This document shows, piece after piece, positions 515 to 62,151 of a stretch of DNA of 64,000 nt. How positions within the stretch are numbered: position 1 is the stretch's first letter; every line of letters begins with the position of its first letter. This stretch comes from Octopus sinensis (lineage: Eukaryota): positions 248,001-312,000 of the forward strand of contig NC_043014.1 in assembly GCF_006345805.1 (NCBI RefSeq), given 5' to 3'. The notes beneath the pieces were generated by a model. That model did no database searches. It saw only the letters and a program-made list of their open reading frames with translations, and had not been told where the DNA came from. The position numbers and the translations under genes were made by a program.

Positions 515-20627
<20,113 letters not shown>

Positions 20628-41889: not shown

Positions 41890-44800
41890 AACATACAAAT
41901 ACTAAACATGTACAATCTACTCCACTCTTAAGTGTAAAAACACCTAACTTAATCCATTATCTCATTTATTAGAGACAGGAAAAGCTGTGTGAATATATCA
42001 TTTTACATCCATTTTTCCATGCTAGCATGGGTTAGATGAATATATTACTAAGGCCCTTCCAATTGCTTACCCTTTATTTTTCGAGTAAAGGCTCACTTAT
42101 TTTACACATCTTTGAAGATATGAAGTGAGGAGACAACTGTTTGACACAACAGCATATAACAGCCTGCAACATTTGCAGAGCACATGTAGTGGGCTTCTTT
42201 CAGTTTCCATTTACAAAATCCACCCAGAAGGTATTGGTCACTTCGGGGCTAAAGCAAAAGATACTTGACTAGGTTGCCAAGCAGAGGGACTGAACCTGAA
42301 ACCATTTAGTTCTATCATAATGCAGGGCCCCTTGGGCAAGAGCCTTCAGGTACAGCCCTAGGTTAACCAATGTCCTGTCAGTGGATTTAGCAGATGCGTT
42401 TGCATGTGTGGATGTTTATATTCTGCGTCTTGGCATAAAACAAAGAAAAGACACTTTTTAAACACTCCACAGCTCAGAAAGTGTCTTGTAGTCCTCTCCT
42501 TTTGAGGACACAGGGAATGAAAAAAACCCTTGCTAAAAAGAAAAACAGGATAGAATTAGCAGTAGAAACAGCATCCAGTTATAAATTTAATGCCTCAAGA
42601 AATATTCCTCCAACCCATGCAATCCAGGAAAACCAGATGTAAACAAAAAAAGAAACAGAAATCAAGAAAAACAAAATCTCAGTTGCCATCCCTGAAACCC
42701 CTCAGGCTTACCTTTTCTTACTTGGTTTTTGGACAATTTCTTCTTCGATTTCTTCCTCCTCGCTGCTACTCTCCGGTTCCATGTCCTTCAAGTCACCCAT
42801 CATTTGTCCTTTCATATTCTGGGTTAAAAACCAAAAAAAAAGAATGAATAACTGACCTCTTGTGCAATAGCAATCATCATTGTCATCATCATCATCTTCA
42901 GCATCACCAACACTACCATCATCACCACCACCATCATCATCATCAGTATATGAAGGGTTAAAGTGTTTGTTTTGCAACAAGGGTTCACAATTTGTTTCCT
43001 GAGATGGCATCTTGACAATCAAACGTCTTTCACAACAACCTCATCAATCAAGAAACCTTGTCATGGGAAATTTGACAGCTGGAAATGGTCGGAAACCCAT
43101 TACACACACACACACACACAGGTTGGCAGAATGAATGCAGAAATACCATGTGGTATTTAATGCCATTACACTTTTGTCCCTTTACACACTCGACCATCAA
43201 TGAAATCAACAAAATATTGGGATTAATGAAACCTGCTAAAATTGCAAAAGGTGGTGCTCCAGCATGGCTACAATCCAGCAAAAGGTGGTGCTCCAGCATG
43301 GCTACAATCCAGCAAAAGGTGGTGCTCCAGCATGGCTACAATCCAGCAAAAGAATGAAATAGAACAACAGACTTACCAAATCATGTGAAGTGAGGTTTTT
43401 CACCACTTCAGCATCAGTGATGTCACCATTCACTAAACCATTCTTAGAGCTAAAGTCCAAACTTTCCGCATCAGTTTTGCTCACACAGTTGTCCCATTTG
43501 CGAGCGACTTTGCCCTTCTTCTTCTTATCTTCTGGGCTCTTGCTGTTACCAAAAAAGAAAAGAAAACACATTTAGTCATTTATTTGCTCTCAATCAATGG
43601 AATGTGTTTGTGTAAAGCTGTGTAGAAAACACAGCAACCTGTCAAAATTACTAATTTCTCCTGATAGTGAGAAAATTATAAACTGCCTTAATTAATTTTC
43701 AGCCCAAGGAAACAGGGACGAGTGACCGAGACTTTTGGAGATTTACTGTGCTTGAGAAGACATGTGAAGCCAAGTGAGATAATAGTCATGGCTGATGCCA
43801 GTGTTACATAAATGGCACGTGAAAAGCACCCACTATAGTCTTGGGGTGGTTGGCATTAGGAAGAGCATCCAGCCATAGAAACCAGGCCAAATCAGATTAG
43901 AAACTGGTGCAGCAGTTTTCAATCAAACCATCCAATCCATGCCAGCATGAAAAACAGACATTAAATGATGACGATGATGGGGGTTTTATTAGGGGTGTCG
44001 AAATCACTTATGGAGAAACTGTTCCCAACTGTGGTCAACCTACAGTTTCAAATTAATAGCAGAACTTGAAGCAGTTCAGTAGTGCTACACCAGAAAGCAA
44101 GCGTCAATGGAAGAGTTGAGTTACCGAGAGAGATTGAAAGAGCTATGGACTCTACTCCCTGGAGTGATACATGTATTGAAGATCCTGGAGGGGCTGCACC
44201 AAACTTTGGTATCGAGAGCAATACCAGCCCCTGAACTGTACGTCACTGCACTGTTCCAAAGGTCACAGCTATTCCGTCTGAGTGAGGACCGTGCGCTGCA
44301 ATAGGTTGGGATTCAAGGGCCCATGATTATATGATGCCTTGCCAAAACATCTGAGCGATCTTCATGGAGTAGGGGGTAGATGTATGTAGAGAGAAACTAT
44401 GCAGCAGAGTGTCAAAAGGCTTGTATTTTAATTTTGCACCTTTGTGTCTATCGTTTATACTTTAGTCAGAAAAACAATTTAATGAATAATGAATGCAGTA
44501 GGTTTGTTGTCCAAGAGCTGGATTGCTCATTGCTGAAACCAACAAGAGATCCACAATCACATATACAAGAGAGAGAGAAAGTGTGTGTGTGATTGTGGAT
44601 GCACGGATGTATGCGTGTGTCCCCTCATACAACTCATAAGTGCACTTTCAACATTGGCATCCATTGCATTCCCAAAAACAATAGCACCATGCCCACTCCC
44701 AGAGAGAAAGCTAATCTACAACACGTTCACTTTCCTGGTAAAACTTGGTAAAATGAAATAAAAGCCCACAAACCTAACATCTTGTTGTTGTTGTTGTTTT

Positions 44801-47800
44801 GCAGGTTTTTTCTTGAACTTTTTCTCAATATTTCTTCGAATAGTTTCTTCATCCAATTCTCCAGCCGTGTCTTTGATCACAGCCTCCTCTTTCACTGGTG
44901 CCGCTGCCATTTTAAATGCTACTTCAGTCGGACGGACTAAAACAAAGACAACAAACTAAAATATCAAATGAAACAAATATTTCTTAGGTTTGAAGTTTTT
45001 CACTAAACAGAAATATCCTGTACCATGATGCACACACACACACACACACACCAAATATCTACTCGGAACTGGTTACTGCCCAGAGCTGGTCCTTATATAA
45101 AGCAGTTAAGTGTGATTTGAAGGAGATTTGACTGCTGTTTTCAACAGACTGAGAAAACCGACCCTCTTTAGCGAGGTACAAGTGTGCAGAGAATTCCAGT
45201 TACCCTCTCTTAAAATCTCTCCACATTGAGATAAACCAGATTGAGGTTTACCTCAGAATCTCTTCATTTCAGTATGTCCATGCATGTTAACAATACACCT
45301 AACTTTTCACTGAATATATTAAATGCTAACAACAACAATAATAATGTCAAATTTTGGCACAAGGTCAACAATTTTAGGGACACATAATTAGTTAATTTCA
45401 TTGACCCCTGTACTCAACAGATACTTATATTTTACTGACCCCAAAAGGATGAAATGCAAAGAGGGCTTTAACAGGATTTCAACTCGGAATGTGGATGAGG
45501 ATAATCGTTTGTAACATAAGTACAATGACTGAACTTGGGTAGGAGCTCAGTTGACCATTTCAACCTCAGTACTTGACTGGTACTTTATTTTATCCACCCC
45601 AAAAGTACAAAAAAGAAAATTGACCTAAGCAGGATTTGAACTTAAATTGTAAAGTGCTGAAATACCTTCCCCGAGATATCTTTAACAATTCTGCCACCCT
45701 TGGATAAGACAAAGCTTTTTGTATGAGGCGCTAACAATTCAAAAACCTGCCAATCACAAAATGCTGCAAGAAGAATATTTAAACCAATTGAAGACCTGCA
45801 AATTCAGTGAAACCTCAACGTACAGCAATGAAGACTCAGGAAACGCATGAAGAGCGGAAAAGGCCTGAATGGATTTTGTGGGAGAGAAGCTTACAAAGGT
45901 CAGAAAGTAAAAGATTTCTCAGTGTTTCTAAGTGGTTCCAAGCAGATGAAATTGTGAAAGACATGATTGAAGAGCATCATGAAGATAGGGAGGATATTGA
46001 TAATGGAGTGATGAGGGTGACGATAATGGTGGGGGAGGGGGATAAGGGTGGGGGAGGGGGATGAGGGTGGGGGAGGGGGATGAAGGTGGGTGAGGGTGGT
46101 GATCCTACCTTTGTTATTCTTTTCTTCTTTTTTCTTCTTGTCTTCTTTTCTATTTTCTATCATCGACGCCACAGTTTTTTTCGACTTCTGGGATTCTTCA
46201 TAACTCTTCATCTTTCTGCAAAAATAACCAGAAACAATTAACAGAGATAAATAAATAAAAAAACTGAAACTAATTCATAAAATAAGAGATATTCAACCCA
46301 TGGATTTCACGTAAAAAAAGCAAAATATATAAATTCAACATTAGCTAATTTGACACACCCACTGAATCAATATCGTGTTACTATAAACTATTCTCAGTCA
46401 TGTACACAAATGAACACCACAACAGGACTTCCTAGAGTAATTCACTTTGCTAATTAATTGGATTCCTCACACTCTACCATTAAATGCCTGCACTGCTGCT
46501 CTTGCCAGTTACCAAACTAAACCATTGTTTGCTGGGATGTGTTTGAGGTACCATCAGAGTCAGAAAAGTTTCTCCCTCATTGATGTTAGAGACTGGAATG
46601 CTTTCATCATTTGGCACAACACACCACCGCAGGCATATACGAAACATCGCAGAGATTTATGGAACACAGCCTTTAGCATCTAAACCCCATTGGGATATAC
46701 TAAGCACAAACTTTATCATCCAATTTTATATCAATGCTAACCTGGCTAAAACTAATGCCATTTCTATGTTGACAACTCTAAGAAGCAAAGTATATCCAAT
46801 TGTAAAATAATTGCCATTAGTCTATGCAAATGTTTCAATTTGCACAACTATCAACAAAAGTACACAAGAAAAAAATTAATTTCACAAAGTGGACTTGTTT
46901 GTGACCAAATGACCAGTCATTCAGTTCTTAAAAACAGCATACAAGTGTAACATTGCACTACAGATCTCAGTAACACTTTACTCCTTGATAGACATATGTG
47001 TACTTGAAAAAGTACACATCATTAATACAGATATGATACGGAGACCAAAATTATCTCAAAATCTTCTCCACAGCAAAGCCATGACCACCACGTCCTAACC
47101 AATATGAACAGCAGAATAATTATAGAAATAATGAGGAAAAATACATTTCATATTTAATCAAGAAAAACTATGATCAACGTATGGAAGGGGAGATGAGTTA
47201 AGTGATGTGTTGAAGGTAGCATCAGAGTCAGAAAAGTTGAAACCCTCACTGGTATTAGAGACTAGAAGAAGACTTCATCATTTGATACAACACATCAGCA
47301 GGAGATTAGCGAATTAAAGACTCACAATTCAAAGCTAGAAAACATTGAACTTGTTACACTGAGAATCCCAATGTCTCCATAACAAAGCACAATTTACAAA
47401 ACAAAAGCAAAGGGGACACATTTTATATCATAAAAAGTTGCACACAAATAACATCCACTCCATCACTGCAATTCGGAAACCAAAACGGCTATCTTGGGAG
47501 AAGGGGTTGTAGGTCGGTCGAGCTTACATAAATACCATTTTTATTAAGTAAAATATTTTTACAGGAGGGAAAAAATTAAAAGTAGAAATTATTGAGGAAA
47601 AAACCCCCAAATTAGACGTCCAAACGGAGACGCAAATTATCTCAAAATTCTTCTCCCCACAGCAAACAGGCAATTTACCTCCAAATCTTGGCCCCCAAAT
47701 ATGAACAGCCTCACAAATATGTAAAGCAAATAGCTGAGCCTGGTGAACCACGAATAAACCGGTTCTATTCTGATTCGATTATCTTACAACTCCACCCAGG

Positions 47801-50800
47801 TCCATTGACAACCGATGATAGCCTTTGCAGCCGATTAGGTTCACTGGTCAAGTAGCGAAGAAGCACCAGTTACCTCCCTTACATCACGCCTGATTTCTTT
47901 TCTCTCTTGACCCTTTTTCCTAACCCTTTTTGGCTACAGAAAAGGGAAGACGGGTGTTGTGTCTGACAGTGTCCTTCTTATTGACTCATATTTCACCGTG
48001 GAATAAGAAATGTCCATTTTCCTTAATCAGACCAGCAAGAACCAAACATACAAAAATAGATGTAGACATTTGAAAAACAGTTTTACTAATGGCAGTGCTC
48101 CAGCATGGCCGCAATCAAATGACTGAAACAAGTAAAAGAGTTATGTTGTGAAGCTGGGAGTAAACAAATTTGATTTTATCTAGATTAGATGACAAAATGG
48201 AAGCGGCTTAGTTTGAACCTGTAATTGCCAGGCCAATAACCCAGATGTTTAACCCCTCCTCCACTAGTGCGGTTTGGCAACCAATCTATGTCTTTAAGGT
48301 ACCATCAGAGTCAGAAAAGTTGAAACCCTCATTGACATTAGAGACTATAAAAAGACTTCATCATTTGGTACAGTAATTTGGGAGGTAAGAAGACTATAAT
48401 TCATATCAACAGTTTGTTTTCTGTGTGAAATACTTTTTAGAAATGGACCCTAGTGGCGCAAAAGCAAACAGAATAAACTCTACCGCTTTTGGAAAACAAT
48501 CAGTTTTGCACTCCATGATACGTGTAGCCACTAAGGTGACATGTGGCTGGTGGGGTGCAACCAATTTTATTGTAGGAAATAGGGAATATGCCATTCCATA
48601 TCTATGCATACATACCTTTAAATTTTCCTTATTTGCTTGTATATTCATTATTAATCTATATAAGAGCGAAACCAAAAACTGTACATTAGCCACATAACAT
48701 TGGAACCTGTACTTGTTGTATATCTAAAATTCTCTTTGTCTTCCCATTTGTTCGCAATGCATTCTCCAACGGCTCAACCAAATCAAATCAGATTTTACAT
48801 GGTAATAGTATCAGACCCCATCAGTGTCAACATGTCATTTTTCTTTCCATTTGGATTAAAACAATACAAAAGTGGCACTGATTCGGTAAAACAAGTCAAA
48901 CATGAGAGAATAACATCTATATTGTAATGTGACATAGGATTGTTTCACTTTTAATTCTAATTACATCCTAATGTGAGCAACATTACACATCGGCTTCTTT
49001 CTGTCTTTACAGGAACGGTGTGTCAGTGTGTGTTGACTGACAGAACAGACAGCTGAAGGGGAAACCCTTGACAAAAGACAATGAGGTGGCAGGCCCAAGG
49101 GATAGAAAAATACACATTTACCATTCAATTCTCAGTTAATAATTATCACAGCAACTGCAAATTTACCGTTAAATTAGCAATCCATACATGTGCTTCTATT
49201 TGGTTCATTTATTCTGCATACAAAAATAAAGACATATTACATACATACAACTGCTTACACGAAAAGAGATTTCTGTATAATTTCTTCTGTGTTCATAATT
49301 TTTGGTTTACAATATTGATAGAACTACCCCACCAAAGAAAAGACGTAATCTCTCCAGAAACAAGTACAAAGCAAGGAGGATTTTAGAAGACCAAAGGCAA
49401 GAGAGAGAGACGGTGAAACATTCTCAAGATCAGCAAAGGGATGCTGCAGCACATCAAAGGGGGTCTCAAGAGAGAAGCGAGATGAGACTTTCCCAAGATC
49501 AGCAAAGGGATGCTGCAGCACATCAAAGGGGGTCTCAAGAGAGAAGCGAGATGAGACTTTCCCAAGATCAGCAAAGGGATGCTGCAGCACATCAAAGGGG
49601 GTCTCAGAGAGAAGCGAGATGAGACTTTCCCAAGATCAGCAAAGGGATGCTGCAGCACATCAAAGGGGGTCTCAGAGAGAGAAGCGAGAGGAGACTTTCC
49701 CAAGATCAGCAAAGGGATGCTGCAGCACATCAAAGGGGGTCTCAAGAGAGAAGCGAGATGAGACTTTCCCAAGATCAGCAAAGGGATGCTGCAGCACATC
49801 AAAGGGGGTCTCAAGAGAGAAGCGAGATGAGACTTTCCCAAGATCAGCAAAGGGATGCTGCAGCACATCAAATGGGGTCTCAAGAGAGAAGCGAGAGAGA
49901 CTTTCCCAAGATCAGCAAAGGGATGCTGCAGCACATCAAAGGGGGTCTCAAGAGAGAAGCGAGAGAGATGAGACTTTCCCAAGATCAGCAAAGGGATGCT
50001 GCAGCACATCAAAGGGGGTCTCAAGAGAGAAGCGAGAGAGAGGAGACTTTCCCAAGATCAGCAAAGGGATGCTGCAGCACATCAAAGGGGGTCTCAAGAG
50101 AGAAGCGAGATGAGACTTTCCCAAGATCAGCAAAGGGATGCTGCAGCACATCAAAGGGGGTCTCAAGAGAGAAGCGAGAGGAGACTTTCCCAAGATCAGC
50201 AAAGGGATGCTGCAGCACATCAAAGGGGGTCTCAAGAGAGAAGCGAGAGGAGACTTTCCCAAGATCAGCAAAGGGATGCTGCAGCACATCAAAGGGGGTC
50301 TCAAGAGAGAAGCGAGAGGAGACTTCCCCAAGATCAGCAAAGGGATGCTGCAGCACATCAAAGGGGGTCTCAAGAGAGAAGCGAGATGAGACTTTCCCAA
50401 GATCAGCAAAGGGATGCTGCAGCACATCAAAGGGGGTCTCAAGAGAGAAGCGAGATGAGACTTCCCAAGATCAGCAAGGGATGCTGCAGCACATCAAAGG
50501 GGGTCTCAAGAGAGAAGCGAGATGAGACTTTCCCAAGATCAGCAAAGGGATGCTGCAGCACATCAAAGGGGGTCTCAAGAGAGAAGCGAGATGAGACTTT
50601 CCCAAGATCAGCAAAGGGATGCTGCAGCACATCAAAGGGGTCTCAAGAGAGAAGCGAGATGAGACTTTCCCAAGATCAGCAAAGGGATGCTGCAGCACAT
50701 CAAAGGGGGTCTCAAGAGAGAAGCGAGATGAGACTTCCCCAAGATCAGCAAAGGGATGCTGCAGCACTTAATCCAGAATCATTAAACCAACTTTGTTTTA

Positions 50801-53800
50801 ATGATTAGACAAGGGTCCAACAGAACAGCTCTCAGAAACACACTACGTACAAATTCGTTCTTCACAACTCCTGGAGCAGCTTCCAGATATAATCCATCCC
50901 ATTCTTATAAAAAAGATAATCTTGTCCAAATTGTTGTGTATAAACTCAAATTGTCATTTCTGCAAAGCTTTAAAATTTCCAAAGGAAACTAACGGGATGT
51001 GCTGCTCAGGTGGGCAGGTAACATTGTCAGCACTACCAACTCTTTCTCAACCACTTATGGATCTTCTGGAAGGTACTTCCATCCAGTCAAAGGATTTTCT
51101 GAAGAATATCAGACAATACAACTCTGCATTCCAAATGACATCGTTTGGTTCATCTAAGGAGATAGTTGACCATGGATTTACACCGACGTTCAAAGTTCAA
51201 GGGCAAGATCACCTCATTGGTTCTCCGTTACGCACAAATGAACAACCACAGTTCCTGCAAATTTACTTTATGAATGATGTTGGACAACAAACCTGAGGGA
51301 GGTGTCCAAACTGCAGGCGATGGGTCAAGTTAGACGCAGCACCGACTGCTGCAAAGGAGGAGTATATCCACTGACAACATATCAGTGCATTCAAATATCA
51401 CATGCCCACCCCACCTCCAATTTTCCAGGATTGGTTAGGGCTTGGAATACACCAAACAGACAAATCACAAGTCGCTTAGTCGAATTGGCCATCGTTTAAT
51501 CCACAATGTTTTTTCATCAATGTTGCACTTTCCCGTATCACCTCTTTCAACATAACTGTAGTTTATTATATATATATGTATCAAATGAAAAACAGGAAAC
51601 AAAGGATGTTGCGGTACATATGTTTCAGGCTTTATAGAATAACTTATTCTTACATCGACATAACAGATAGTTCAAAAGCCTTCTGCAGCCGCGTGCAATT
51701 GCTACACCAAAGACTTGTATCACATTATAAAAGGTTTGAGAAAAAACATTTGGAATTGTTTACCATTATAAACAATACCAAAAATATATTTGTGTTCTGA
51801 GTTCTACTTTCCTGTTTCCATCAGCATGCACACACACACACATACATACATATATATATAAATTCAACAATAGCTAATTTGACACACCCACTGAATCAAT
51901 ATCGTGTTACTATAAACTATTCTCAGTCATGTACACAAATGAACACCACAACAGGACTTCCTAGAGTAATTCACTTTGCTAATTAATGGATTCCTCACAC
52001 TCTACCATTAAATCCTGCACTGCTGCTCTTGCCAGTTACCAAACTAAACCACTGTTTGCTGGGATGTGTTTGAGGTACCATCAGAGTCAGAAAAGTTCTC
52101 CCCTCATTGATGTTAGAGACTGGAATGCTTTCATCATTTGGCACAACACACCACCGCAGGCATATACTAAACATCGCAGAGATTTATGGAACACAGCCTT
52201 TAGCATCTAAACCCCATTGGGATATACTAAGCACAAACTTTATCATCCAATTTTATATCAATGCTAACCTGGCTAAAACTAATGCCATTTCCATTATCAT
52301 TGCTGACAACTCTAAGAAGCAAAGTATATCCAATTGTAAAATAATTGCCATTAGTCTATGCAAATGTTTCAATTTGCACAACTATCAACAAAAGTACACA
52401 AGAAAAAAATTAATTTCACAAAGTGGACTTGTTTGTGACCAAATGACCAGTCATTCAGTTCTTAAAAACAGCATACAAGTGTAACATTGCACTACAGATC
52501 TCAGTAACACTTTACTCCTTGATAGACATATGTGTACTTGAAAAAGTACACATCATTAATACAGATATGATACGGAGACCAAAATTATCTCAAAATCTTC
52601 TCCACAGCAGAGCCATGACCACCACGTCCTTACCAATATGACCACCACAATAATTATAGAAATAATGAGGAAAAATACATTTCATATTTAATCAAGAAAA
52701 ACTATGATCAACGTATGGAAGGGGACATGGGTTAAGTGATGTGTTTAAGGTAGCATCAGAGTCAGAAAAGTTGAAACCCTCATTCGTATTAGAGACTAGA
52801 AGAAGACTTCATCATTTGATACAACACATCAGCAGGAGATTAGCGAATTAAAGCCCGACAATTCAAAGCTAGAAAACATTGAACTTGTTACACTGAGAAA
52901 CCCAATGTCTCCATAACAAAGCACAATTTACAAAACAAAAGCAAAGGGGACACATTTTATATCATAAAAAGTTGCACACAAATAACATCCACTCCATCAC
53001 TGCAATTCGGAAACCAAAACGGCTATCTTGGGAGAAGGGGTTGTAGGTCGGTCGAGCTTACATAAATACCATTTTTATTAAGTAAAATATTTTTACAGGA
53101 GGGAAAAAATTAAAAGTAGAAATTATTGAGGAAAAAACCCCCAAATTAGACGTCCAAATAGAGACGCAAATCATCTCAAAAATCTTCTCCCCACAGCAAA
53201 CAGGCAATTTACCTCCAAATCTTGGCCCCCAAATATGAACAGCCTCACAAATATGTAAAGCAAATAGCTGAGCCTGGTGAACCACGAATAAACCGGTTCT
53301 ATTCTGATTCGATTATCTTACAACTCCACCCAGGTCCATTGACAACCGATGATAGCCTTTGCAGCTGATTAGGTTCACTGGTCAAGTAGCGAAGAAGCAC
53401 CAGTTACCTCCCTTACGTCACGCCTGATTTCTTTTCTCTCTTGACCCTTTTTCCTAACCCTTTTTGGCTACAGAAAAGGGAAGACGGGTGTTGTGTCTGA
53501 CAGTGTCCTTCTTATTGACTCATATTTCACCGTGGAATAAGAAATGTCCATTTTCCTTAATCAGACCAGCAAGAACCAAACATACAAAAATAGATGTAGA
53601 CATTTGAAAAACAGTTTTACTAATGGCAGTGCTCCAGCATGGCCGCAATCAAATGACTGAAACAAGTAAAAGAGTTATGTTGTGAAGCTGGGAGTAAACA
53701 AATTTGATTTTATCTAGATTAGATGACAAAATGGAAGCGGCTTAGTTTGAACCTGTAATTGCCAGGCCAATAACCCAGATGTTTAACCCCTCCTCCACTA

Positions 53801-56800
53801 GTGCGGTTTGGCAACCAATCTATGTCTTTAAGGTACCATCAGAGTCAGAAAAGTTGAAACCCTCATTGACATTAGAGACTATAAAAAGACTTCATCATTT
53901 GGTACAGTAATTTGGGAGGTAAGAAGACTATAATTCATATCAACAGTTTGTTTTCTGTGTGAAATACTTTTTAGAAATGGACCCTAGTGGTGCAAAAGCA
54001 AACAGAATAAACTCTACCGCTTTTGGAAAACAATCAGTTTTGCACTCCATGATACGTGTAGCCACTAAGGTGACATGTGGATGGTGGGGTGCAACCAATT
54101 TTATTGTAGGAAATAGGGAATATGCCATTCCATATCTATGCATACATACCTTTAAATTTTCCTTATTTGCTTGTATATTCATTATTAATCTATATAAGAG
54201 CGAAACCAAAAACTGTACATTAGCCACATAACATTGGAACCTGTACTTGTTGTATATCTAAAATTCTCTTTGTCTTCCCATTTGTTCGCAATGCATTCTC
54301 CAACGGCTCAACCAAATCAAATCAGATTTTACATGGTAATAGTATCAGACCCCATCAGTGTCAACATGTCATTTTTCTTTCCATTTGGATTAAAACAATA
54401 CAAAAGTGGCACTGATTCGGTAAAACAAGTCAAACATGAGAGAATAACATCTATATTGTAATGTGACATAGGATTGTTTCACTTTTAATTCTAATTACAT
54501 CCTAATGTGAGCAACATTACACATCGGCTTCTTTCTGTCTTTACAGGAACGGTGTGTCAGTGTGTGTTGACTGACAGAACAGACAGCTGAAGGGGAAACC
54601 CTTGACAAAAGACAATGAGGTGGCAGGCCCAAGGGATAGAAAAATACACATTTACCATTCAATTCTCAGTTAATAATTATCACAGCAACTGCAAATTTAC
54701 CGTTAAATTAGCAATCCATACATGTGCTTCTATTTGGTTCATTTATTCTGCATACAAAAATAAAGACATATTACATACATACAACTGCTTACACGAAAAG
54801 AGATTTCTGTATAATTTCTTCTGTGTTCATAATTTTTGGTTTACAATATTGATAGAACTACCCCACCAAAGAAAAGACGTAATCTCTCCAGAAACAAGTA
54901 CAAAGCAAGGAGGATTTTAGAAGACCAAAGGCAAGAGAGAAAGACGGTGAAACATTCTCAAGATCAGCAAAGGGATGCTGCAGCACATCAAAGGGGGTCT
55001 CAAGAGAGAAGTGAGATGAGACTTTCCCAAGATCAGCAAAGGGATGCTGCAGCACATCAAAGGGGGTCTCAAGAGAGAAGCGAGATGAGACTTTCCCAAG
55101 ATCAGCAAAGGGATGCTGCAGCACATCAAAGGGGGTCTCAAGAGAGAAGCGAGATGAGACTTTCCCAAGATCAGCAAGGGATGCTGCAGCACATCAAAGG
55201 GGGTCTCAAGAGAGAAGCGAGAGGAGACTTTCCCAAGATCAGCAAAGGGATGCTGCAGCACATCAAAGGGGGTCTCAAGAGAGAAGCGAGAGGAGACTTC
55301 CCCAAGATCAGCAAAGGGATGCTGCAGCACATCAAAGGGGGTCTCAGAGAGAAGCGAGATGAGACTTTCCCAAGATCAGCAAAGGGATGCTGCAGCACAT
55401 CAAAGGGGGTCTCAAGAGAGAAGCGAGATGAGACTTCCCCAAGATCAGCAAAGGGATGCTGCAGCACATCAAAGGGGGTCTCAAGAGAGAAGCGAGATGA
55501 GACTTTCCCAAGATCAGCAAAGGGATGCTGCAGCACATCAAAGGGGGTCTCAAGAGAGAAGCGAGATGAGACTTTCCCAAGATCAGCAAAGGGATGCTGC
55601 AGCACATCAAAGGGGGTCTCAAGAGAGAGCGAGATGAGACTTTCCCAAGATCAGCAAAGGGATGCTGCAGCACATCAAAGGGGGTCTCAAGAGAGAAGCG
55701 AGATGAGACTTTCCCAAGATCAGCAAAGGGATGCTGCAGCACATCAAAGGGGGTCTCAAGAGAGAAGCGAGATGAGACTTTCCCAAGATCAGCAAAGGGA
55801 TGCTGCAGCACATCAAAGGGGGTCTCAAGAGAGAAGCGAGATGAGACTTCCCCAAGATCAGCAAAGGGATGCTGCAGCACATCAAAGGGGGTCTCAAGAG
55901 AGAAGCGAGAGGAGACTTTCCCAAGATCAGCAAAGGGATGCTGCAGCACATCAAAGGGGGTCTCAAGAGAGAAGCGAGATGAGACTTTCCCAAGATCAGC
56001 AAAGGGATGCTGCAGCACATCAAAGGGGGTCTCAAGAGAGAAGCGAGATGAGACTTTCCCAAGATCAGCAAAGGGATGCTGCAGCACATCAAAGGGGGTC
56101 TCAAGAGAGAAGCGAGATGAGACTTCCCCAAGATCAGCAAAGGGATGCTGCAGCACATCAAAGGGGGTCTCAAGAGAAGCGAGATGAGACTTTCCAAGAT
56201 CAGCAAAGGGATGCTGCAGCACATCAAAGGGGGTCTCAAGAGAGAAGCGAGATGAGACTTCCCAAGATCAGCAAAGGGATGCTGCAGCACATCAAAGGGG
56301 GTCTCAAGAGAGAAGCGAGAGGAGACTTTCCCAAGATCAGCAAAGGGATGCTGCAGCACATCAAAGGGGGTCTCAAGAGAGAAGCGAGATGAGACTTTCC
56401 AAGATCAGCAAAGGGATGCTGCAGCACATCAAAGGGGTCTCAAGAGAGAAGCGAGATGAGACTTTCCCAAGATCAGCAAAGGGATGCTGCAGCACATCAA
56501 AGGGGGTCTCAAGAGAGAAGCGAGATGAGACTTCCCCAAGATCAGCAAAGGGATGCTGCAGCACATCAAAGGGGGTCTCAAGAGAGAAGCGAGATGAGAC
56601 TTTCCCAAGATCAGCAAAGGATGCTGCAGCACATCAAAGGGGGTCTCAAGAGAGAAGCGAGATGAGACTTCCCAAGATCAGCAAAGGGATGCTGCAGCAC
56701 ATCAAAGGGGGTCTCAAGAGAGAAGCGAGATGAGACTTCCCCAAGATCAGCAAAGGGATGCTGCAGCACATCAAAGGGGGTCTCAAGAGAGAAGCGAGAT

Positions 56801-58462
56801 GAGACTTTCCCAAGATCAGCAAAGGGATGCTGCAGCACATCAAAGGGGGTCTCAAGAGAGAAGCGAGATGAGACTTTCCCAGATCAGCAAAGGGATGCTG
56901 CAGCACATCAAAGGGGGTCTCAAGAGAGAAGCGAGATGAGACTTCCCCAAGATCAGCAAAGGGATGCTGCAGCACATCAAAGGGGGTCTCAAGAGAGAAG
57001 CGAGATGAGACTTTCCCAAGATCAGCAAAGGGATGCTGCAGCACATCAAAGGGGGTCTCAAGAGAGAAGCGAGATGAGACTTCCCCAAGATCAGCAAAGG
57101 GATGCTGCAGCACATCAAAGGGGGTCTCAAGAGAGAAGCGAGATGAGACTTCCCCAAGATCAGCAAAGGGATGCTGCAGCACATCAAAGGGGGTCTCAAG
57201 AGAGAAGCGAGATGAGACTTTCCCAAGATCAGCAAAGGGATGCTGCAGCACATCAAAGGGGTCTCAAGAGAGAAGCGAGATGAGACTTCCCCAAGATCAG
57301 CAAAGGGATGCTGCAGCACATCAAAGGGGGTCTCAAGAGAGAAGCGAGATGAGACTTCCCCAAGATCAGCAAAGGGATGCTGCAGCACTTAATCCAGAAT
57401 CATTAAAACAACTTTGTTTTAATGATTAGACAAGGGTCCAACAGAACAGCTCTCAGAAACACACTACGTACAAATTCGTTCTTCACAACTCCTGGAGCAG
57501 CTTCCAGATATAATCCATCCCATTCTTATAAAAAAGATAATCTTGTCCAAATTGTTGTGTATAAACTCAAATTGTCATTTCTGCAAAGCTTTAAAATTTC
57601 CAAAGGAAACTAACGGGATGTGCTGCTCAGGTGGGCAGGTAACATTGTCAGCACTACCAACTCTTTCTCAACCACTTATGGATCTTCTGGAAGGTACTTC
57701 CATCCAGTCAAAGGATTTTCTGAAGAATATCAGACAATACAACTCTGCATTCCAAATGACATCGTTTGGTTCATCTAAGGAGATAGTTGACCATGGATTT
57801 ACACCGACGTTCAAAGTTCAAGGGCAAGATCACCTCATTGGTTCTCCGTTACGCACAAATGAACAACCACAGTTCCTGCAAATTTACTTTATGAATGATG
57901 TTGGACAACAAACCTGAAGGAGGTGTCCAAACTGCAGGCGATGGGACATGTTAGACGCAGCACCGACTGCTGCAAAGGAGGAGTATATCCACTGACAACA
58001 TATCAGTGCATTCAAAAATCACATGCCCACCCCACCTCCAATTTTCCAGGATTGGTTAGGGCTTGGAATACACCAAACAGACAAATCACAAGTCGCTTAG
58101 TCGAATTGGCCCATCGTTTAATCCACAAATGTTTTTTCATCAATGTTGCACTTTCCCGTATCACCTCTTTCAACATACCTGTAGTTTATTATATATATAT
58201 GTATCAAATGAAAAACAGGAAACAAAGGATGTTGCGGTACATATGTTTCAGGCTTTATAGAATAACTTATTCTTACATCGACATAACAGATAGTTCAAAA
58301 GCCTTCTGCAGCCGCGTGCAATTGCTACACCAAAGACTTGTATCACATTATAAAAGGTTTGAGAAAAAACATTTGGAATTGTTTACCATTATAAACAATA
58401 CCAAAAATATATTTGTGTTCTGAGTTCTACTTTCCTGTTTCCATCAGCATGCACACACACAC

Positions 58463-58503
<41 letters not shown>

Positions 58504-60923
58504 AATTCAACATTAGCTAATTTGACACACCCACTGAATCAATATCGTGTTACTATAAACTATTCTCAGTCATGTACACAAATGAACACCACAACAGGGT
58601 TCCTAGAGTAATTCACTTTGCTAATTAATTGGATTCCTCACACTCTACCATTAAATGCCTGCACTGCTGCTCTTGCCAGTTACCAAACTAAACCATTGTT
58701 TGCTGGGATGTGTTTGAGGTACCATCAGAGTCAGAAAAGTTTCTCCCTCATTGATGTTAGAGACTGGAATGCTTTCATCATTTGGCACAACACACCACCG
58801 CAGGCATATACGAAACATCGCAGAGATTTATGGAACACAGCCTTTAGCATCTAAACCCCATTGGGATATACTAAGCACAAACTTTATCATCCAATTTTAT
58901 ATCAATGCTAACCTGGCTAAAACTAATGCCATTTCCATTATCATTGCTGACAACTCTAAGAACCAAAGTATATCCAATTGTAAAATAATTGCCATTAGTC
59001 TATGCAAATGTTTCAATTTGCACAACCATTAACAAAAGTACACAAGAAAAAAATTAATTTCACAAAGTGGACTTGTTTGTGACCAAATGACCAGTCATTC
59101 AGTTCTTAAAAACAGTATACAAGTGTAACATTGCACTACAGATCTCAGTAACACTTTACTCCTTGATAGACATATGTGTACTTGAAAAAGTACACATCAT
59201 TAATACAGATATGATACGGAGACCAAAATTATCTCAAAATCTTCTCCACAGCAGAGCCATGACCACCACGTCCTTACCAATATGACCACCACAATAATTA
59301 TAGAAATAATGAGGAAAAATACATTTCATATTTAATCAAGAAAAACTATGATCAATGTATGGAAGGGGACATGGGTTAAGTGATGTGTTTAAGGTAGCAT
59401 CAGAGTCAGAAAAGTTGAAACCCTCATTGGTATTAGAGACTAGATGAAGACTTCATCATTTGATACAACACATCAGCAGGAGATTAGCGAATTAAAGCCC
59501 GACAATTCAAAGCTAGAAAACATTGAACTTGTTACACTGAGAAACCCAATGTCTCCATAACAAAGCACAATTTACAAAACAAAAGCAAAGGGGACACATT
59601 TTATATCATAAAAAGTTGTACACAAACAACATCCACTCCATCACTGCAATTCGGAAACCAAAATGGCTATCTTGGGAGAAGGGGTTGTAGGTCGGTCGAG
59701 CTTACATAAATACCATTTTTATTAAGTAAAATATTTTTACAGGAGGGAAAAAATTAAAAGTAGAAATTATTGAGGAAAAAACCCCCAAATTAGACGTCCA
59801 AATAGAGACACAAATTATCTCAAAAATCTTCTCCCCACAGCAAACAGGCAATTTACCTCCAAATATCAACAGCCTCACAAATATGTAAAGCAAATAGCTG
59901 AGCCTGGTGAACCACGAATAAACCGGTTCTATTCTGATTCGATTATCTTACAACTCCACCCAGGTCCATTGACAACCGATGATAGCCTTTGCAGCCGATT
60001 AGGTTCACTGGTCAAGTAGCGAAGAAGCACCAGTTACCTCCCTTACATCACGCCTGATTTCTTTTCTCTCTTGACCCTTTTTCCTAACCCTTTTTTGCTA
60101 CAGAAAAGGGAAGACGGTGTTGTGTCTGACAGAGTCCTTCTTATTGACTCATATTTCACCGTGGAATAAGAAATGTCCATTTTCCTTAATCAGACCAGCA
60201 AGAACCAAACATACAAAAATAGATGTAGACATTTGAAAAACAGTTTTACTAATGGCAGTGCTCCAGCATGGCCGCAGTCAAATGACTGAAACAAGTAAAA
60301 GAGTTATGTTGTGAAGCTGGGAGTAAACAAATTTGATTTTATCTAGATTAGATGACAAAATGGAAGTGGCTTAGTTTGAACCTGTAATTGCCAGGCCAAT
60401 AACCCAGATGTTTAACCCCTGCACTATTGTGGTTCGGCAACCAATCTATGTCTTTAAGGTACCATCAGAGTCAGAAAAGTTGAAACCCTCATTGACATTA
60501 GAGACTACAAAAAGACTTCATCATTTGGTACAGTAATTTGGTAGGCTTTGCATCAGTCAGCTGGTCTTCCTCTAATACAGTAATTCTCTTGGTGATAATA
60601 AATTGATGGTCGTATTAATAGGCAATCTATTCACTAATTACTGCTTACACCCTCACAATTTATTTGACGATTTCTTGGTTCAATTTTATGTCCGTTTTGT
60701 CATGCTAATATGGATTACACAAACATATTACTGAGGCTTCAGTCTTACAGGCAGATACTCTCTGTAGTGTCAAGCGTTGCCTGTTCTTCATATAAGTTAT
60801 CTTTTATTCCATAAGTCTTCAAAGGCGCAAGGCCAAAAGACAATTTAGTGACAGGGGAAATAGAATCATGACTTGTGACTCAGCAATTTGCAGAGAAGCA
60901 CAGACACACACACAGAGTAACCA

Positions 60924-60959
<36 letters not shown>

Positions 60960-62151
60960 TATTATCATGGTTCAACATCCAGTTCTCCATACTTGCATGG
61001 GCCAGACAGAATTTGTTGAGACAGAATTTCTACAAATGGATGTTCTTCCTGTCACTAACCCTCAACTGTCTCTAAGTAAGGTAACATTTTGTAAAGGCCA
61101 GACATGATTTAACTGAAGACTGGAAACAAAGAACACCACTGGATGACAGTAACATTCATTTCACACCTGATAAGCTTTTTTTCAGTTTCCATCAATCGAA
61201 TCCACTCACAGGACCTTTGTCAGCCTGGGGCTTGAGTAGAAGATTCTTGCCCAAGGTGTCCTGCATTGGAACTGAACCAGACACTATGTGGTCGAGAAAC
61301 AAACTACTTCACTATACAGCCATGCCTGTGTCTATAAACAAAAACCTTAAACAAGTTACTCTATTTATAATTCCACTCTGTATTTAGTCATACAAATGCT
61401 ACTTTTGCTTCTCCACACAGAGTTAGACTGTTGCCCTGAAGAGTTCTAATAAAACAGGAATATGTCCAGAGTTATCACTACACTGCCAAACACCAGGCTC
61501 AGTCCTTACTATACTTCATATTAATTTCAATTAAAATTGTGGGGTTATCTCCTCTCGTCCAAATTTCCTACTAAGAATGTTGTTTTAATTAAAATCCCTT
61601 GACTTAAATACATCCACAATGCTCTTGTCCAATTTACATCTCTAAGCATCCATGTCATGACCACCACTTCTGACCAGTCATTCTATGAGTAAATTACACC
61701 AAATTCCTGTCCTTCCCATCCTCTGCACCACTTCTCTTCATTACACATGTTGTCTCCAGTCTACTTTGGACCCTATCTACTCTCTCATCTCTCACACTGA
61801 CTACTAAACATTTCTTTTGAAATTCTCTTCTTTCCTGAGTCTAAATATGATCTTTTCACACAAAGGTTTACAAACATAAATATGATGAGTGATTTGAACT
61901 CACAACCTTTAATTCTCCAGATTTCACCATAACAATAACCAAAATATTTTACCCTACCTCGGCTTCTGGGCTTGCAAAATGCTTTCATCCACCGTTTCCT
62001 TGAGTAGAAGATTGAAATCTTCTCGAAAATCAAAATTTCGAGATATATTTCCCCGTTGAAGGTCATCTTTATATTTATTCCGAAACTCCACTTGGATGGC
62101 AGTCAGAAACTTGTCGACATAGGACAGTTGTAATATCTTTTGATACGCTAC
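32308..62151 (-). CDS. SRPRA: Signal recognition particle receptor subunit alpha, 5'-partial spliced gene; exons in transcript order 62151-61958, 46215-46109, 44936-44774, 43542-43377, 42818-42712, 41352-41186, 40037-39951, 38274-38102, 37821-37608, 34602-34517, 33767-33591, 32436-32308
   Basis: 589 aa assembled with all phases consistent. SRX/longin part ([16 protein letters not shown]), charged linker, and NG GTPase domain with G1 [27 protein letters not shown]3 DTAGR, G4 TKFD and C-terminal [27 protein letters not shown]. Confidence 0.97.
32712..33140 (+). mobile_element. SINE family 1 copy with internal duplication
   Basis: agaagaccc(g/a)tcaagccaag occurs twice (about 32722 and 32923), followed by the family 3' part. 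Confidence 0.7.
33591..33767 (-). CDS. SRPRA: SRPRA exon (G4 TKFD)
   Basis: cctacag|CTA ATT ... AAG|gttggt; [20 protein letters not shown]...[10 protein letters not shown]. Confidence 0.97.
34517..34602 (-). CDS. SRPRA: SRPRA exon (G3 DTAGR)
   Basis: ctttgaag|CT CGT ... AAA|gtaagt; [29 protein letters not shown] (not in the ORF track). Confidence 0.96.
35340..36345 (+). mobile_element. RTE-BovB-like LINE reverse transcriptase fragment, antisense in an SRPRA intron
   Basis: [14 protein letters not shown]...[53 protein letters not shown]...[15 protein letters not shown]. Confidence 0.85.
37608..37821 (-). CDS. SRPRA: SRPRA exon (G domain)
   Basis: tttttag|GTG GGA ... TTT G|gtaagt; [16 protein letters not shown]...EKGYGKDAA. 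Confidence 0.97.
38102..38274 (-). CDS. SRPRA: SRPRA exon (P-loop G1)
   Basis: tttaag|GT ATC ... AAG|gtaaat; [21 protein letters not shown]. Confidence 0.97.
38590..38800 (+). mobile_element. Penelope-like element GIY-YIG endonuclease remnant
   Basis: YIYIGV followed by [27 protein letters not shown], resembling the C-terminal GSKxCxLCLxE motif of Penelope ORFs. Confidence 0.55.
39951..40037 (-). CDS. SRPRA: SRPRA exon (N domain)
   Basis: ttaatccag|CA AAG AAT ... GAT A|gtaagt; [29 protein letters not shown] (not in the ORF track). Confidence 0.95.
41186..41352 (-). CDS. SRPRA: SRPRA exon (start of N domain)
   Basis: aaccaaag|T GAC ... ATT G|gtaagt; [32 protein letters not shown]. Confidence 0.93.
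41534..41672 (-). mobile_element. SINE family 1 copy, inverted
   Basis: Reverse complement reads ggtgttaggaaggacatccagccatagaaaccatgcc...cccatgccagcatgggaaatggacgttaaatgatgatg. Confidence 0.75.
42712..42818 (-). CDS. SRPRA: SRPRA exon (acidic linker)
   Basis: aacccag|AAT ATG ... AAA AG|gtaagc; [23 protein letters not shown]. Confidence 0.9.
43244..43352. repeat. 34-bp perfect tandem repeat x3.2 derived from a SINE 3' tail
   Basis: gcaaaaggtggtgctccagcatggctacaatcca x3; the related motif ggcagtg(c/t)ccagcatggcc occurs at about 29635 and 48091. Confidence 0.9.
43377..43542 (-). CDS. SRPRA: SRPRA exon (linker, RKWD...LDFS motif)
   Basis: ggtaacag|C AAG ... TTG|gtaagt; [12 protein letters not shown]...LDFS. 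Confidence 0.9.
43745..43979 (+). mobile_element. SINE family 1 copy
   Basis: tgcttgagaagac...ggttggcattaggaagagcatccagccatagaaacc...catgccagcatg...ttaaatgatgacgatgatg. Confidence 0.75.
44000..44400 (+). mobile_element. CR1/L2-type LINE 3' fragment
   Basis: [25 protein letters not shown]...VLKILEGL matches the conserved post-RT region of CR1-group LINEs. Confidence 0.7.
44774..44936 (-). CDS. SRPRA: SRPRA exon (linker)
   Basis: gttttag|TC CGT ... GTT AG|gtttgt; [18 protein letters not shown]; a second in-frame donor is possible 5 nt earlier. Confidence 0.82.
46109..46215 (-). CDS. SRPRA: SRPRA exon
   Basis: ttttgcag|A AAG ATG ... AAA G|gtagga; [20 protein letters not shown]. Confidence 0.92.
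49302..51637 (+). mobile_element. Internally deleted Helitron RepHel relic, copy 1
   Basis: N-terminus [17 protein letters not shown], then 23-aa repeats, then the Cys motif [23 protein letters not shown]..., [18 protein letters not shown]...PTFKVQGQ...PQFLQIYF typical of Helitron RepHel N-termini. It jumps directly to frameshifted helicase C-terminal remnants (NFP..RAW..., [32 protein letters not shown]). The Rep (HUH) domain and most of the helicase are absent. Confidence 0.85.
49421..50767 (+). repeat. 69-bp minisatellite, about 19.5 units (encodes [23 protein letters not shown])
   Basis: Unit gagactttcccaagatcagcaaagggatgctgcagcacatcaaagggggtctcaagagagaagcgagat, counted as 69 nt. Confidence 0.97.
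54836..58260 (+). mobile_element. Internally deleted Helitron RepHel relic, copy 2
   Basis: Same architecture as copy 1 with a longer repeat array; ORFs 54836-56392, 57543-57917, 57923-58423 (VALSRIT) and 58063-58260. Confidence 0.85.
54955..57387 (+). repeat. 69-bp minisatellite, about 35 units
   Basis: Same unit; recurrent variants ttcccc and gagaggag, plus 1-2 nt indels in homopolymers and AG runs. Confidence 0.97.
60965..61325 (-). mobile_element. SINE family 1 copy with probable tRNA-like head
   Basis: Reverse complement starts caggcatggctgtatag...ggttcagttcc (A/B-box-like) and continues with the family body; related heads at about 4775-4945 and 11570-11750. Confidence 0.6.
61958..62151 (-). 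CDS. SRPRA: SRPRA exon (SRX domain)
   Basis: cttacccag|GTA GCG TAT ... CCG AG|gtaggg; [28 protein letters not shown]...QAQKP. Confidence 0.93.

Follow-up and report, generated by a model that had tools for sequence, protein, structure and literature searches.

The locus considered here raises the question of whether two long arrays of a 69-bp repeat, readable as tandem 23-aa units similar to the STPR DNA-binding repeats, encode a protein of variable copy number or are the debris of a transposon. The original prediction, made for the window (the whole stretch of 64,000 nucleotides analysed here), proposed the former, with the frame breaks taken as possible long-read errors, and kept a dead minisatellite derived from a transposable element as its fallback.

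Structure of the arrays and their Helitron flanks

The consensus of the 69-nt unit obtained with Tandem Repeats Finder is identical for the two arrays, which comprise 19.8 and 35.8 copies (Table 1), close to the approximately 19.5 and 35 units predicted. Translation confirms a 23-aa consensus unit without a stop, read in the frame continuing from the Helitron-type N-terminus, and both arrays terminate in the expected ...(N/K)QLCFND*. Array 1 consists of units of 69 nt (12), 68 nt (three), 73 nt (two), 70 nt (one), and 67 nt (one); array 2 of units of 69 nt (24), 68 nt (ten), and 66 nt (one). Exact 69-nt intervals, equivalent to 23 residues, hence make up 36/54 over both arrays, and the frame is broken in 7/19 intervals of array 1 and 11/35 of array 2. 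The unit variants are M8R (9 units), S11P (13), R23M (one), and one synonymous change.

Table 1. Features of the repeat block and of its surroundings in the window.
Feature	Position	Strand	Remarks
SRPRA exon, presumed charged linker	46110-46216	-	downstream end of host intron; ORF 45900-46211(-)
Macro unit 1	46325-51853	+	5529 bp; contains Helitron relic copy 1
RepHel N-terminus relic, copy 1	49326-49397	+	BLASTP to extended P0073 N-terminus
69-bp array 1	49398-50767	+	97% matches, score 2517
Post-array Helitron relic, copy 1	50768-51464	+	no Rep or helicase after
Macro unit 2	51854-58496	+	6643 bp; contains Helitron relic copy 2
RepHel N-terminus relic, copy 2	54860-54931	+	ACC instead of ATG, as in copy 1
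69-bp array 2	54932-57388	+	97% matches, score 4660
Post-array Helitron relic, copy 2	57389-58085	+	ORF 57543-57917; stop and frameshifts as in copy 1
Partial macro unit 3	58497-60545	+	first 2049 bp of the unit alone; without Helitron relic
SRPRA exon, SRX domain (~human residues 68-132)	61969-62151	-	upstream end of host intron; tblastn E=4e-8

Protein similarity supports the assignment of the flanks of the arrays to the N-terminal part of a Helitron RepHel ORF, in agreement with the Helitron-type N-terminus of the original prediction. The N-terminus together with the repeats aligns in register with the N-terminus of the RepHel protein P0073 (BLASTP, 42% identity over 127 aa, E=3e-15) and, more weakly, with that of P0074 (E=4e-5); the observed score of the unit against P0073 is reached by 1 of 2000 unit shuffles. 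At the start region, relatives have ATG-CCA-CCA-AAG, and both window copies have ACC-CCA-CCA-AAG, with ACC (49326-49328 in copy 1) occupying the position of the ATG start; in relative L002 this region reads ACC ATG CCA CCA AAG AAA. An in-frame TAA (49296-49298 in copy 1) lies 30 nt upstream of the ACC. The region upstream of the relic shows no DNA similarity to the upstream regions of relatives, as just 166 bp of coding sequence align (73%).

The relic downstream of array 1 starts with a decayed last repeat containing a stop, followed by an AFxYxP-like segment in the frame of 50801-50992, a frameshift, and the ORF 50922-51296 with a CxxCxAxKF...CCxxGxV... segment; the ORF is closed by the in-frame TGA at 51294-51296, and weak similarity continues to ~51464. 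The stop and the two frame changes after the array are identical in both copies. Searched against 1.84 billion representative proteins, the ORF 50922-51296 has 2871 matches at E<=1e-3, with identities of 58-67% for the best (67% for P0073), and Helitron_like_N and PIF1 are present in the matching proteins themselves or in neighbouring genes. The Cys-rich pattern located upstream of Rep, CxxCxAxKF...CCxxGKVxL...YNSxFQMTSFG, is found in the ORFs of both copies, with invariant columns C, C, A, E, C, N, F, and S. A tblastn search of the whole 64-kb window with 13 RepHel proteins, several of them with Rep and/or helicase domains, yields no similarity past ~51464 and 58085, and no Rep (HUH, Helitron_like_N) or PIF1-type helicase anywhere.

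As predicted, the arrays run antisense to SRPRA: minus-strand SRPRA exons lie on either side, and the repeat block occupies ~90% of one SRPRA intron. The exon at its downstream end, presumed from similarity to human SRPRA to encode the charged linker, has an TTTTTGCAG acceptor and a GTAGG donor on the minus strand (boundaries by eye), and the macro repeat starts ~107 nt from the acceptor.

Relation of the unit to STPR domains

STPR repeats have strictly 23 residues with conserved Glu1, Thr/Ser2, and Arg9, and the STPR domain, which is known from Bombyx FMBP-1 and human ZNF821, binds DNA along the major groove, that of FMBP-1 preferring AT-rich DNA (PMC4856987); STPRs are also among the domains stably carried by HLE1 Helitrons in the HELIANO survey (PMC11417382). 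The alignments with P0073, P0074, and FMBP-1 fix the register of the window unit as G1 S2 ... R9 L10. Compared with the FMBP-1/ZNF821 domain (PF21107, 5D23), the window unit is likewise a 23-residue tandem helical unit and keeps Ser2, Arg9, and Leu10; however, Glu1 is replaced by Gly, and the DNA-contact residues Arg6 (replaced by Ser), Tyr16, and Arg20 are lost. FMBP-1/ZNF821 have four repeats and are rich in basic residues, whereas the window has 20-36 repeats of a unit with four Arg and one His against four Asp/Glu, that is, with a net charge of ~0.

Direct comparisons do not connect the unit with STPR. Neither four window units nor the N-terminus with seven units match the Pfam STPRs family at E<=1 (four canonical STPR units, the positive control, score 105 bits, 2.8e-30), and a Pfam scan of the unit in the three + frames finds no STPRs and no Helitron family; the sub-threshold matches Spp-24, P311, and PccH were taken as noise. 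In the PDB sequence search, the window peptide does not match FMBP-1, and a match to the bacterial 4KWY (E=0.0026) was rejected, its alignment being gapped and compositional. The similarity of the unit to FMBP-1, including the E4/R9/L10 positions on which the original prediction relied, is equalled by 413 of 2000 composition-preserving shuffles. The unit is thus tied to STPR through intermediates and through its position in the protein.

The intermediates are the relatives. A 23-column HMM trained solely on their units recognises 10/10 window units in the STPR frame, 0 in either of the remaining + frames, and all four FMBP-1 units. Of 92 relatives, 12 match STPRs (best E=1.3e-13). The repeats of P0074 (36 bits) and P0089 (33 bits) exceed the gathering threshold of 27 bits for PF21107 and are thus genuine STPRs by the Pfam standard, and P0074 aligns in register with the FMBP-1 structure 5D23 (PDB search, E=0.0038). 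Of the 20 relatives whose N-terminal periodicity is clear, 19 have a period of 23 aa, which supports 23-aa N-terminal repeats as a family trait of these Helitrons. The Helitron/STPR origin of the repeats is thereby supported, but only indirectly: the predicted STPR-like character holds through the relatives and the 23-aa period, and fails for Pfam and PDB matches of the unit itself.

Compared with the STPRs of HLE1 RepHel proteins, the window repeats are alike in position, between an MPPKK-type basic start and a CxxC...CC region, and in the 23-aa/69-bp period and register (S2, R9, L10, QDQ). The relatives, however, run on into Rep and the PIF1 helicase, whereas the window ORF is broken and truncated. 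They have 1-5 units (in one case 12), against 20 and 36 in the window, so that the predicted expansion is supported: the window arrays are far longer than in any relative examined. At the DNA level, 69-bp repeats are present in L002 (3.5 copies), L003 (3.9), and L005 (10.7); with 3.5-11 copies of a 69-bp tandem repeat encoding the repeats of relatives, the coding sequence is itself a minisatellite and therefore probably prone to slippage or unequal exchange.

Tandem duplication and origin of the locus

The arrays are part of a larger tandem duplication, with 2.4 copies of a 5.5-6.6 kb unit spanning 46325-60545 in an A-B-A-B-A layout that ends directly after an 85-nt element. Self-BLAST gives 98.4% identity between 46325-50767 and 51854-56290, and 96.9% between 46325-48385 and 58497-60545. 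The flanks of macro units 1 and 2 differ by 30 substitutions in 3073 bp and 9 in 1086 bp; partial unit 3 has 40 substitutions relative to unit 1 and 32 relative to unit 2. Unit 2 is longer than unit 1 only because of its longer 69-bp array and a (TA)n longer by 20 bp. The junctions of the macro repeat are clean (CA)n(TA)n microsatellites. A Helitron rolling-circle concatemer was rejected as the source of the macro repeat, as no Helitron-like ends are found at 46325 and 60545, and an LTR-like A-B-A structure finds no supporting protein similarity.

The observed anatomy, homology, ORF lesions, and shared variants are best joined by the fallback of the original prediction, with a probability of about 0.8 judged from the sequence: the locus is probably a dead transposon-derived minisatellite, grown from a broken Helitron fragment in an SRPRA intron. 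As expected for such a minisatellite, the array is head-to-tail and its unit is homologous to a part of a transposable element. A canonical (HLE1) Helitron would have inserted antisense into the SRPRA intron, and only its 5' coding part would have survived, with the MPPKK-type start, the 23-aa STPR-type repeats, and the Cys-rich pre-Rep region. In the dead copy, one ancestral unit would have been amplified, presumably by slippage or unequal exchange, into a long homogeneous array, which then, without constraint, would have gained frame-breaking indels of 1-4 nt and non-conservative substitutions. Tandem duplication of the entire 5.5-kb segment to 2.4 copies probably came afterwards, with subsequent drift in array length (20 versus 36 units) and in variant frequencies; this order of events is likewise presumed. 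The array would thus be neutral, length-unstable intronic DNA that presumably is not expressed and makes no protein.

Helitrons with STPR domains and minisatellites linked to Helitrons have both been published before. The locus shows in clean form how a repeat lying in codon phase within a transposase ORF may turn into a minisatellite once selection is lifted. In intact elements, the canonical Helitron STPR repeats are encoded by 69-bp DNA tandem repeats of ~1 to 12 copies, and this copy-number variation raises the question of how RepHel binds DNA.

Alternatively, the relic and array might be a mobile non-autonomous Helitron spreading the 69-bp repeat, that is, the seed of a dispersed satellite. 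Helitron families consisting largely of minisatellites are on record for bivalves, Drosophila, bats, and frogs, e.g., the Helentron-borne satDNA of Crassostrea gigas (PMC7492417) and the 166-bp arrays of Xenopus Heli2Xen (PMC12001565), and in the relative P0072, too, a 5' coding fragment of a Helitron is repeated in tandem. Like these elements and DINE-1 of Drosophila, the window has a tandem array of variable copy number in a rolling-circle transposon; however, their repeats are non-coding internal or terminal parts, dispersed in many copies, whereas the window unit is a codon-phased piece of a transposase ORF with one (duplicated) known locus. Helitrons begin with 5'-TC, end with a 3' hairpin followed by CTRR, and insert at A|T. 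A simple, crude scan of the 400-600 bp downstream of the relic finds no GC-rich hairpin with CTRR-T, and the boundaries of the macro repeat are unlike Helitron ends. Self-BLAST of the 64 kb shows the unit and the relic nowhere else, and JGI metagenome contigs give 0 exact matches to the core of the unit; we regard dispersal as unlikely.

It is quite unlikely, too, that live Helitrons of the host lineage, or a transcript from an internal ATG, carry STPR arrays of 20-36 helices, so that the fossil would record a live state. In that case, encoding by a 69-bp coding minisatellite would make the number of DNA-reading helices of the transposase a trait that evolves fast and varies in copy number. 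As Helitrons insert at AT sites and the FMBP-1 STPR favours AT-rich DNA, recognition of the target or of the element ends could depend on the array. Helitron N-termini might also have been domesticated as host STPR transcription factors.

An assembly artefact, with tandem-placed haplotypes or mis-assembly producing the 5.5-kb duplication and/or the array-length difference from one true copy, is very unlikely. The copies do differ by ~1%, comparable with the heterozygosity generally known for bivalves, and units 1 and 2 differ chiefly in the length of their arrays. However, the first 2 kb exist in three distinct versions, pairwise 1.0-1.9% apart, and therefore in more than two haplotypes can give; moreover, the window contains no N or gap, and the microsatellite junctions are clean.

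Indels and coding capacity of the arrays

Returning to the array as a dead minisatellite, the indels deserve separate consideration. They lie in G, T/C, or A/G runs or in an AG dinucleotide run, which agrees with the predicted slips of 1-2 nt in location and mostly in size, except for a +4 (GAGA) insertion in two neighbouring units of array 1. These two adjoining 73-nt units carry the identical insertion yet differ at the ATG/AGG site, and the penultimate units of array 1 and array 2 share an identical GGGG deletion. The unique flanks of the copies are separated by just four single-base indels over 4159 bp, and 1359 bp of SRPRA exon sequence align without frameshifts. At least some of the frame-breaking indels are thus real and inherited, contrary to their explanation as read errors; some 1-nt homopolymer indels could be long-read consensus errors inside the repeat.

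The unit is open not only in the STPR frame but also in a second + frame, in the third + frame of the AGG variant, and in two minus-strand frames, because the + strand is T-poor; openness in the STPR frame is therefore uninformative as to coding. The variants M8R and S11P, both common, are non-conservative, and S11P puts Pro directly after the conserved R9-L10. AlphaFold2 predicts a single continuous helix for 7.4 in-frame units (pLDDT 91, pTM 0.38), a result that does not discriminate, since any charged Ala/Gln/Arg/Glu repeat yields one.

The predicted copy-number-variable STPR-like DNA-binding protein, of ~860 aa for copy 2, could appeal to this confident helix, to a unit that is open and, where the array begins, continues the frame of the basic N-terminus, to an in-frame ATG in every unit, and to the majority of indels being in homopolymers or AG runs; but it is very improbable, since the ancestral start has no ATG in either copy and a TAA upstream, 18 frame-breaking units (11 in copy 2), some of them inherited, would have to be repaired, the downstream ORF is broken, STPR Glu1 and Arg6 and the net positive charge are gone, frequent variants are non-conservative, and the repeat peptide has no match at E<=1e-3 in 5.8 billion proteins (word-indexed search). 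A start codon followed by an uninterrupted frame through the array, as in a protein-coding VNTR gene, is absent, and the longest ATG ORF (55016-56392, 458 aa) is pieced together from stretches of all three frames.

The locus itself is of little significance: a 14-kb repeat block, unstable in length and probably polymorphic. It could serve as a VNTR marker; for assembly and gene prediction it will be a complication, since a unit open in several frames gives long spurious ORFs.

Paired arrays in a tandemly repeated segment of an SRPRA intron

The original prediction of two arrays with a 69-nt unit encoding 23 amino acids in frame is borne out by Tandem Repeats Finder, by translation, and by the intervals obtained after cutting both arrays at a fixed anchor. 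The consensus given by Tandem Repeats Finder is identical between the arrays. Array 1 has twelve intervals of 69 nt and seven others (68, 68, 68, 70, 73, 73, and 67 nt); in array 2, a length of 69 nt occurs 24 times, 68 nt ten times, and 66 nt once. The reading frame of the Helitron-type N-terminus upstream runs into the arrays and gives the 23-aa unit, and the exit peptide of both arrays ends with (N/K)QLCFND*. That this frame is open means little, because the + strand is poor in T: a second + frame, the third in units of the AGG variant, and two frames of the minus strand likewise contain no stop. Running from 55016 to 56392 (458 aa), the longest ORF with an ATG in the arrays passes through all three unit frames. 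Substitution variants among units are M8R (n = 9), S11P (n = 13), R23M (n = 1), and one synonymous change. Both common variants are non-conservative, and one sets Pro beside the conserved R9-L10. The first unit and the decayed last unit are unlike the homogeneous array units.

Features of the repeat block, the Helitron relic, and SRPRA
Feature	Positions	Strand	Remarks
Array 1	49398-50767	+	19.8 copies, 97% matches (Tandem Repeats Finder)
Array 2	54932-57388	+	35.8 copies, 97% matches (Tandem Repeats Finder)
Macro unit 1	46325-51853		self-comparison
Macro unit 2	51854-58496		self-comparison
Partial macro unit 3	58497-60545		first 2 kb only; self-comparison
85-nt element copies	46537-46618, 47205-47289, 48288-48372		equivalent places in units 2 and 3
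Post-array ORF, 124 aa	50922-51296 (copy 1), 57543-57917 (copy 2)		Cys-rich region
SRPRA GTPase-domain exons	38260-32311	minus	
SRPRA Lys/Glu-rich linker exon	about 46216-46110	minus	recognisable splice signals
SRPRA SRX-domain exons	63481-63377 and 62151-61969	minus	

The two arrays are parts of a 5.5-kb tandem repeat (macro unit), not independent insertions. Over the 4159 bp outside the arrays, 39 substitutions and 6 indel events separate macro unit 1 from macro unit 2, and partial unit 3 diverges from them by 1.6-1.9%. Microsatellites of the (CA)n(TA)n type lie at the junctions; the window is free of N. Each macro unit also holds an 85-nt element three times in direct orientation, the copies being 81-90% identical. 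In partial unit 3, the third of these copies directly precedes the end of the macro repeat (60545); hence, this element is a candidate mediator of the duplication.

Given the exon positions on the minus strand, the 14.2-kb repeat block occupies about 90% of a 15.8-kb SRPRA intron in antisense orientation. Only about 107 nt (46217-46325) lie between its start and the linker exon's splice acceptor, and an effect on SRPRA splicing is possible. The nearest SRPRA in the protein collection is that of Dreissena polymorpha (89% identity over 210 aa), a match from which the analysis took the host to be a bivalve of another species. Another SRPRA intron contains a perfect 34-bp tandem repeat, GCAAAAGGTGGTGCTCCAGCATGGCTACAATCCA (43244-43352; 3.2 copies, 100% matches), and a 1.8-kb (AT)n microsatellite lies at 9582-11407 (about 934 copies, 79% matches, region of 16% G+C).

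The 23-aa repeat in Helitron relatives and its relation to STPR

Related Helitron proteins carry 23-aa repeats at the same place as the window: P0073 (EESEDDRARRLTQDQARHATARQ, 4-5 copies), P0074 (SESDEQRSSRLAQDQQCHRTARA, 4 copies), and P0089 (about 12 units). Clear internal periodicity upstream of the CxxC motif was seen in 20 relatives, in 19 of which the period is exactly 23 aa, and three unrelated contigs of relatives show 69-bp tandem repeats in DNA, with 3.5 (95% matches), 3.9 (89%), and 10.7 (85%) copies. With the P0073 N-terminus extended from its contig to the true MPPKK start, the window N-terminus and repeats align to it in register (42% identity over 127 aa, E = 3e-15); for P0074, E = 4e-5. 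Since repeats inflate alignment statistics, the unit was shuffled and then repeated as a control (2000 shuffles); the observed score was reached by one shuffle for P0073 and by 73 for P0074. A 23-column HMM built from the relatives' units alone finds 10/10 window units in the array frame and 0 in the other two + frames. Judged by sequence, the window repeat is the N-terminal repeat proper to this Helitron family.

The unit had also been described as STPR-like, which stands for some relatives but not for the unit taken directly. Against Pfam STPRs (PF21107, threshold 27 bits), four canonical STPR units used as a positive control score 105 bits, while the window unit gives no match at E<=1; P0074 and P0089 exceed the threshold (36 and 33 bits), and 12 of 92 relatives match at E<=0.01 (best 1.3e-13). 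For the window unit, the profile search proposed as a check is negative with Pfam STPRs, but positive with the relatives' HMM, which also detects 4/4 FMBP-1 repeats. The crystallised STPR domain of FMBP-1 (5D23) gives an in-register alignment with P0074 (E = 0.0038). A PDB search with the window repeat did not recover FMBP-1. Against the FMBP-1 STPR sequence, 413/2000 shuffles score as high as the window unit; hence, the E4/R9/L10 resemblance, earlier offered as evidence, is not significant alone. Compared with the STPR criteria (strictly 23 residues, Glu1, Thr/Ser2, Arg9, basic; PMC4856987), the unit still has the right length together with Ser2, Arg9, and Leu10; Glu1 and Arg6 are gone, and it lacks a net positive charge. 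Tied to STPR by homology through its relatives, it descends, on these comparisons, from a repeat of STPR type, has decayed, and is by test no member.

Stable carriage of STPRs by HLE1-group Helitrons is already published (PMC11417382). Most added Helitron domains sit in separate ORFs (HELIANO survey, PMC11417382), whereas P0089 (Leptopilina heterotoma, L005 6001-8529) has STPRs and Helitron_like_N within one predicted protein; in contig L003 (1210-4108), an STPR ORF is followed by a Rep ORF 61 bp further on. From these arrangements, STPR repeats look like a part of RepHel itself.

Helitron relic and coding capacity

The 124-aa ORF contains the motif CxxCxAxKF...CCxxGxV...FKVQGQ of the region preceding the Rep domain of Helitron transposases. 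A word-indexed search gave 71 matches to it, and a search of 1.84 billion representatives gave 2871 at E<=1e-3 (best 58-67% identity), with Helitron_like_N and PIF1 after or within the matched proteins wherever context is available. In tblastn, RepHel similarity ends at about 51464 (copy 1) and 58085 (copy 2), and 13 RepHel proteins, several with Rep and/or helicase, reveal neither domain anywhere in the window. A simple scan found no Helitron 3' end (hairpin and CTRR) in the 400-600 bp after the relic.

Frame breaks in the arrays had been put down as possible read errors. Two neighbouring 73-nt units share a GAGA insertion, yet differ at the ATG/AGG site; a GGGGG-to-GGGG deletion is common to the penultimate units of both arrays; single-base indels in the unique flanks number only 4 in 4159 bp; and 1359 bp of aligned SRPRA exons show no frameshift. 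These data argue that at least some array indels are real. The missing start codon and the post-array lesions stand even if all of them were errors: where relatives have ACC ATG CCA CCA AAG, both copies have ACT ACC CCA CCA AAG, with TAA 30 nt upstream of the ACC codon and no in-frame ATG before either array. Beyond each array, a segment with homology to ...SFFSAPGAAFDYSP...VQIGG of P0073 lies outside the exit frame of the array, with a stop between; the CxxC segment is in a further different frame, closed by TGA. The stop, frame changes, and TGA are identical in copies 1 and 2. Together with the absence of Rep and helicase, this argues against the proposed array-encoded protein. The repeat peptide has no match at E<=1e-3 in 5.8 billion proteins (word-indexed search); the in-frame units are predicted by AlphaFold2 to form one long helix, which is not discriminating.

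Proposed history and known minisatellites

With 20 and 36 units, the window arrays are outliers among the relatives compared, which have 1-5 units (one has 12). Such lengths fit an array that expanded once constraint had been lost; alternatively, live copies in the same genome may carry equally long arrays. Under the former reading, a Helitron would have inserted into the intron, then undergone truncation and ORF decay, followed by amplification of one ancestral unit and by the 5.5-kb duplication. The array was probably already multi-unit at that duplication, because both arrays share M8R, S11P, and several types of indel. Independent turnover would then have produced the present differences in length and in S11P frequency (2/19 units in one array vs 11/35 in the other). 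Slippage and unequal exchange, the standard mechanisms of array change, are assumed here.

The window arrays belong to the known class of transposon-derived minisatellites; an exact match of the unit core was found in none of the JGI metagenome contigs. Helitron-linked minisatellites are well known from bivalves, flies, bats, and frogs (PMC7492417, PMC12001565); those are non-coding parts of the element, whereas the window unit is part of the transposase ORF, in phase with its codons. The annotated protein P0072 of Cordylochernes scorpioides (UYV69010.1) is built of a truncated Helitron N-terminus of 171 aa (MPRRSRP...FGARQVVTN), present three times head to tail and in frame; hence, 5' coding fragments of Helitrons are found in tandem elsewhere too, in parallel to the macro repeat of the window.
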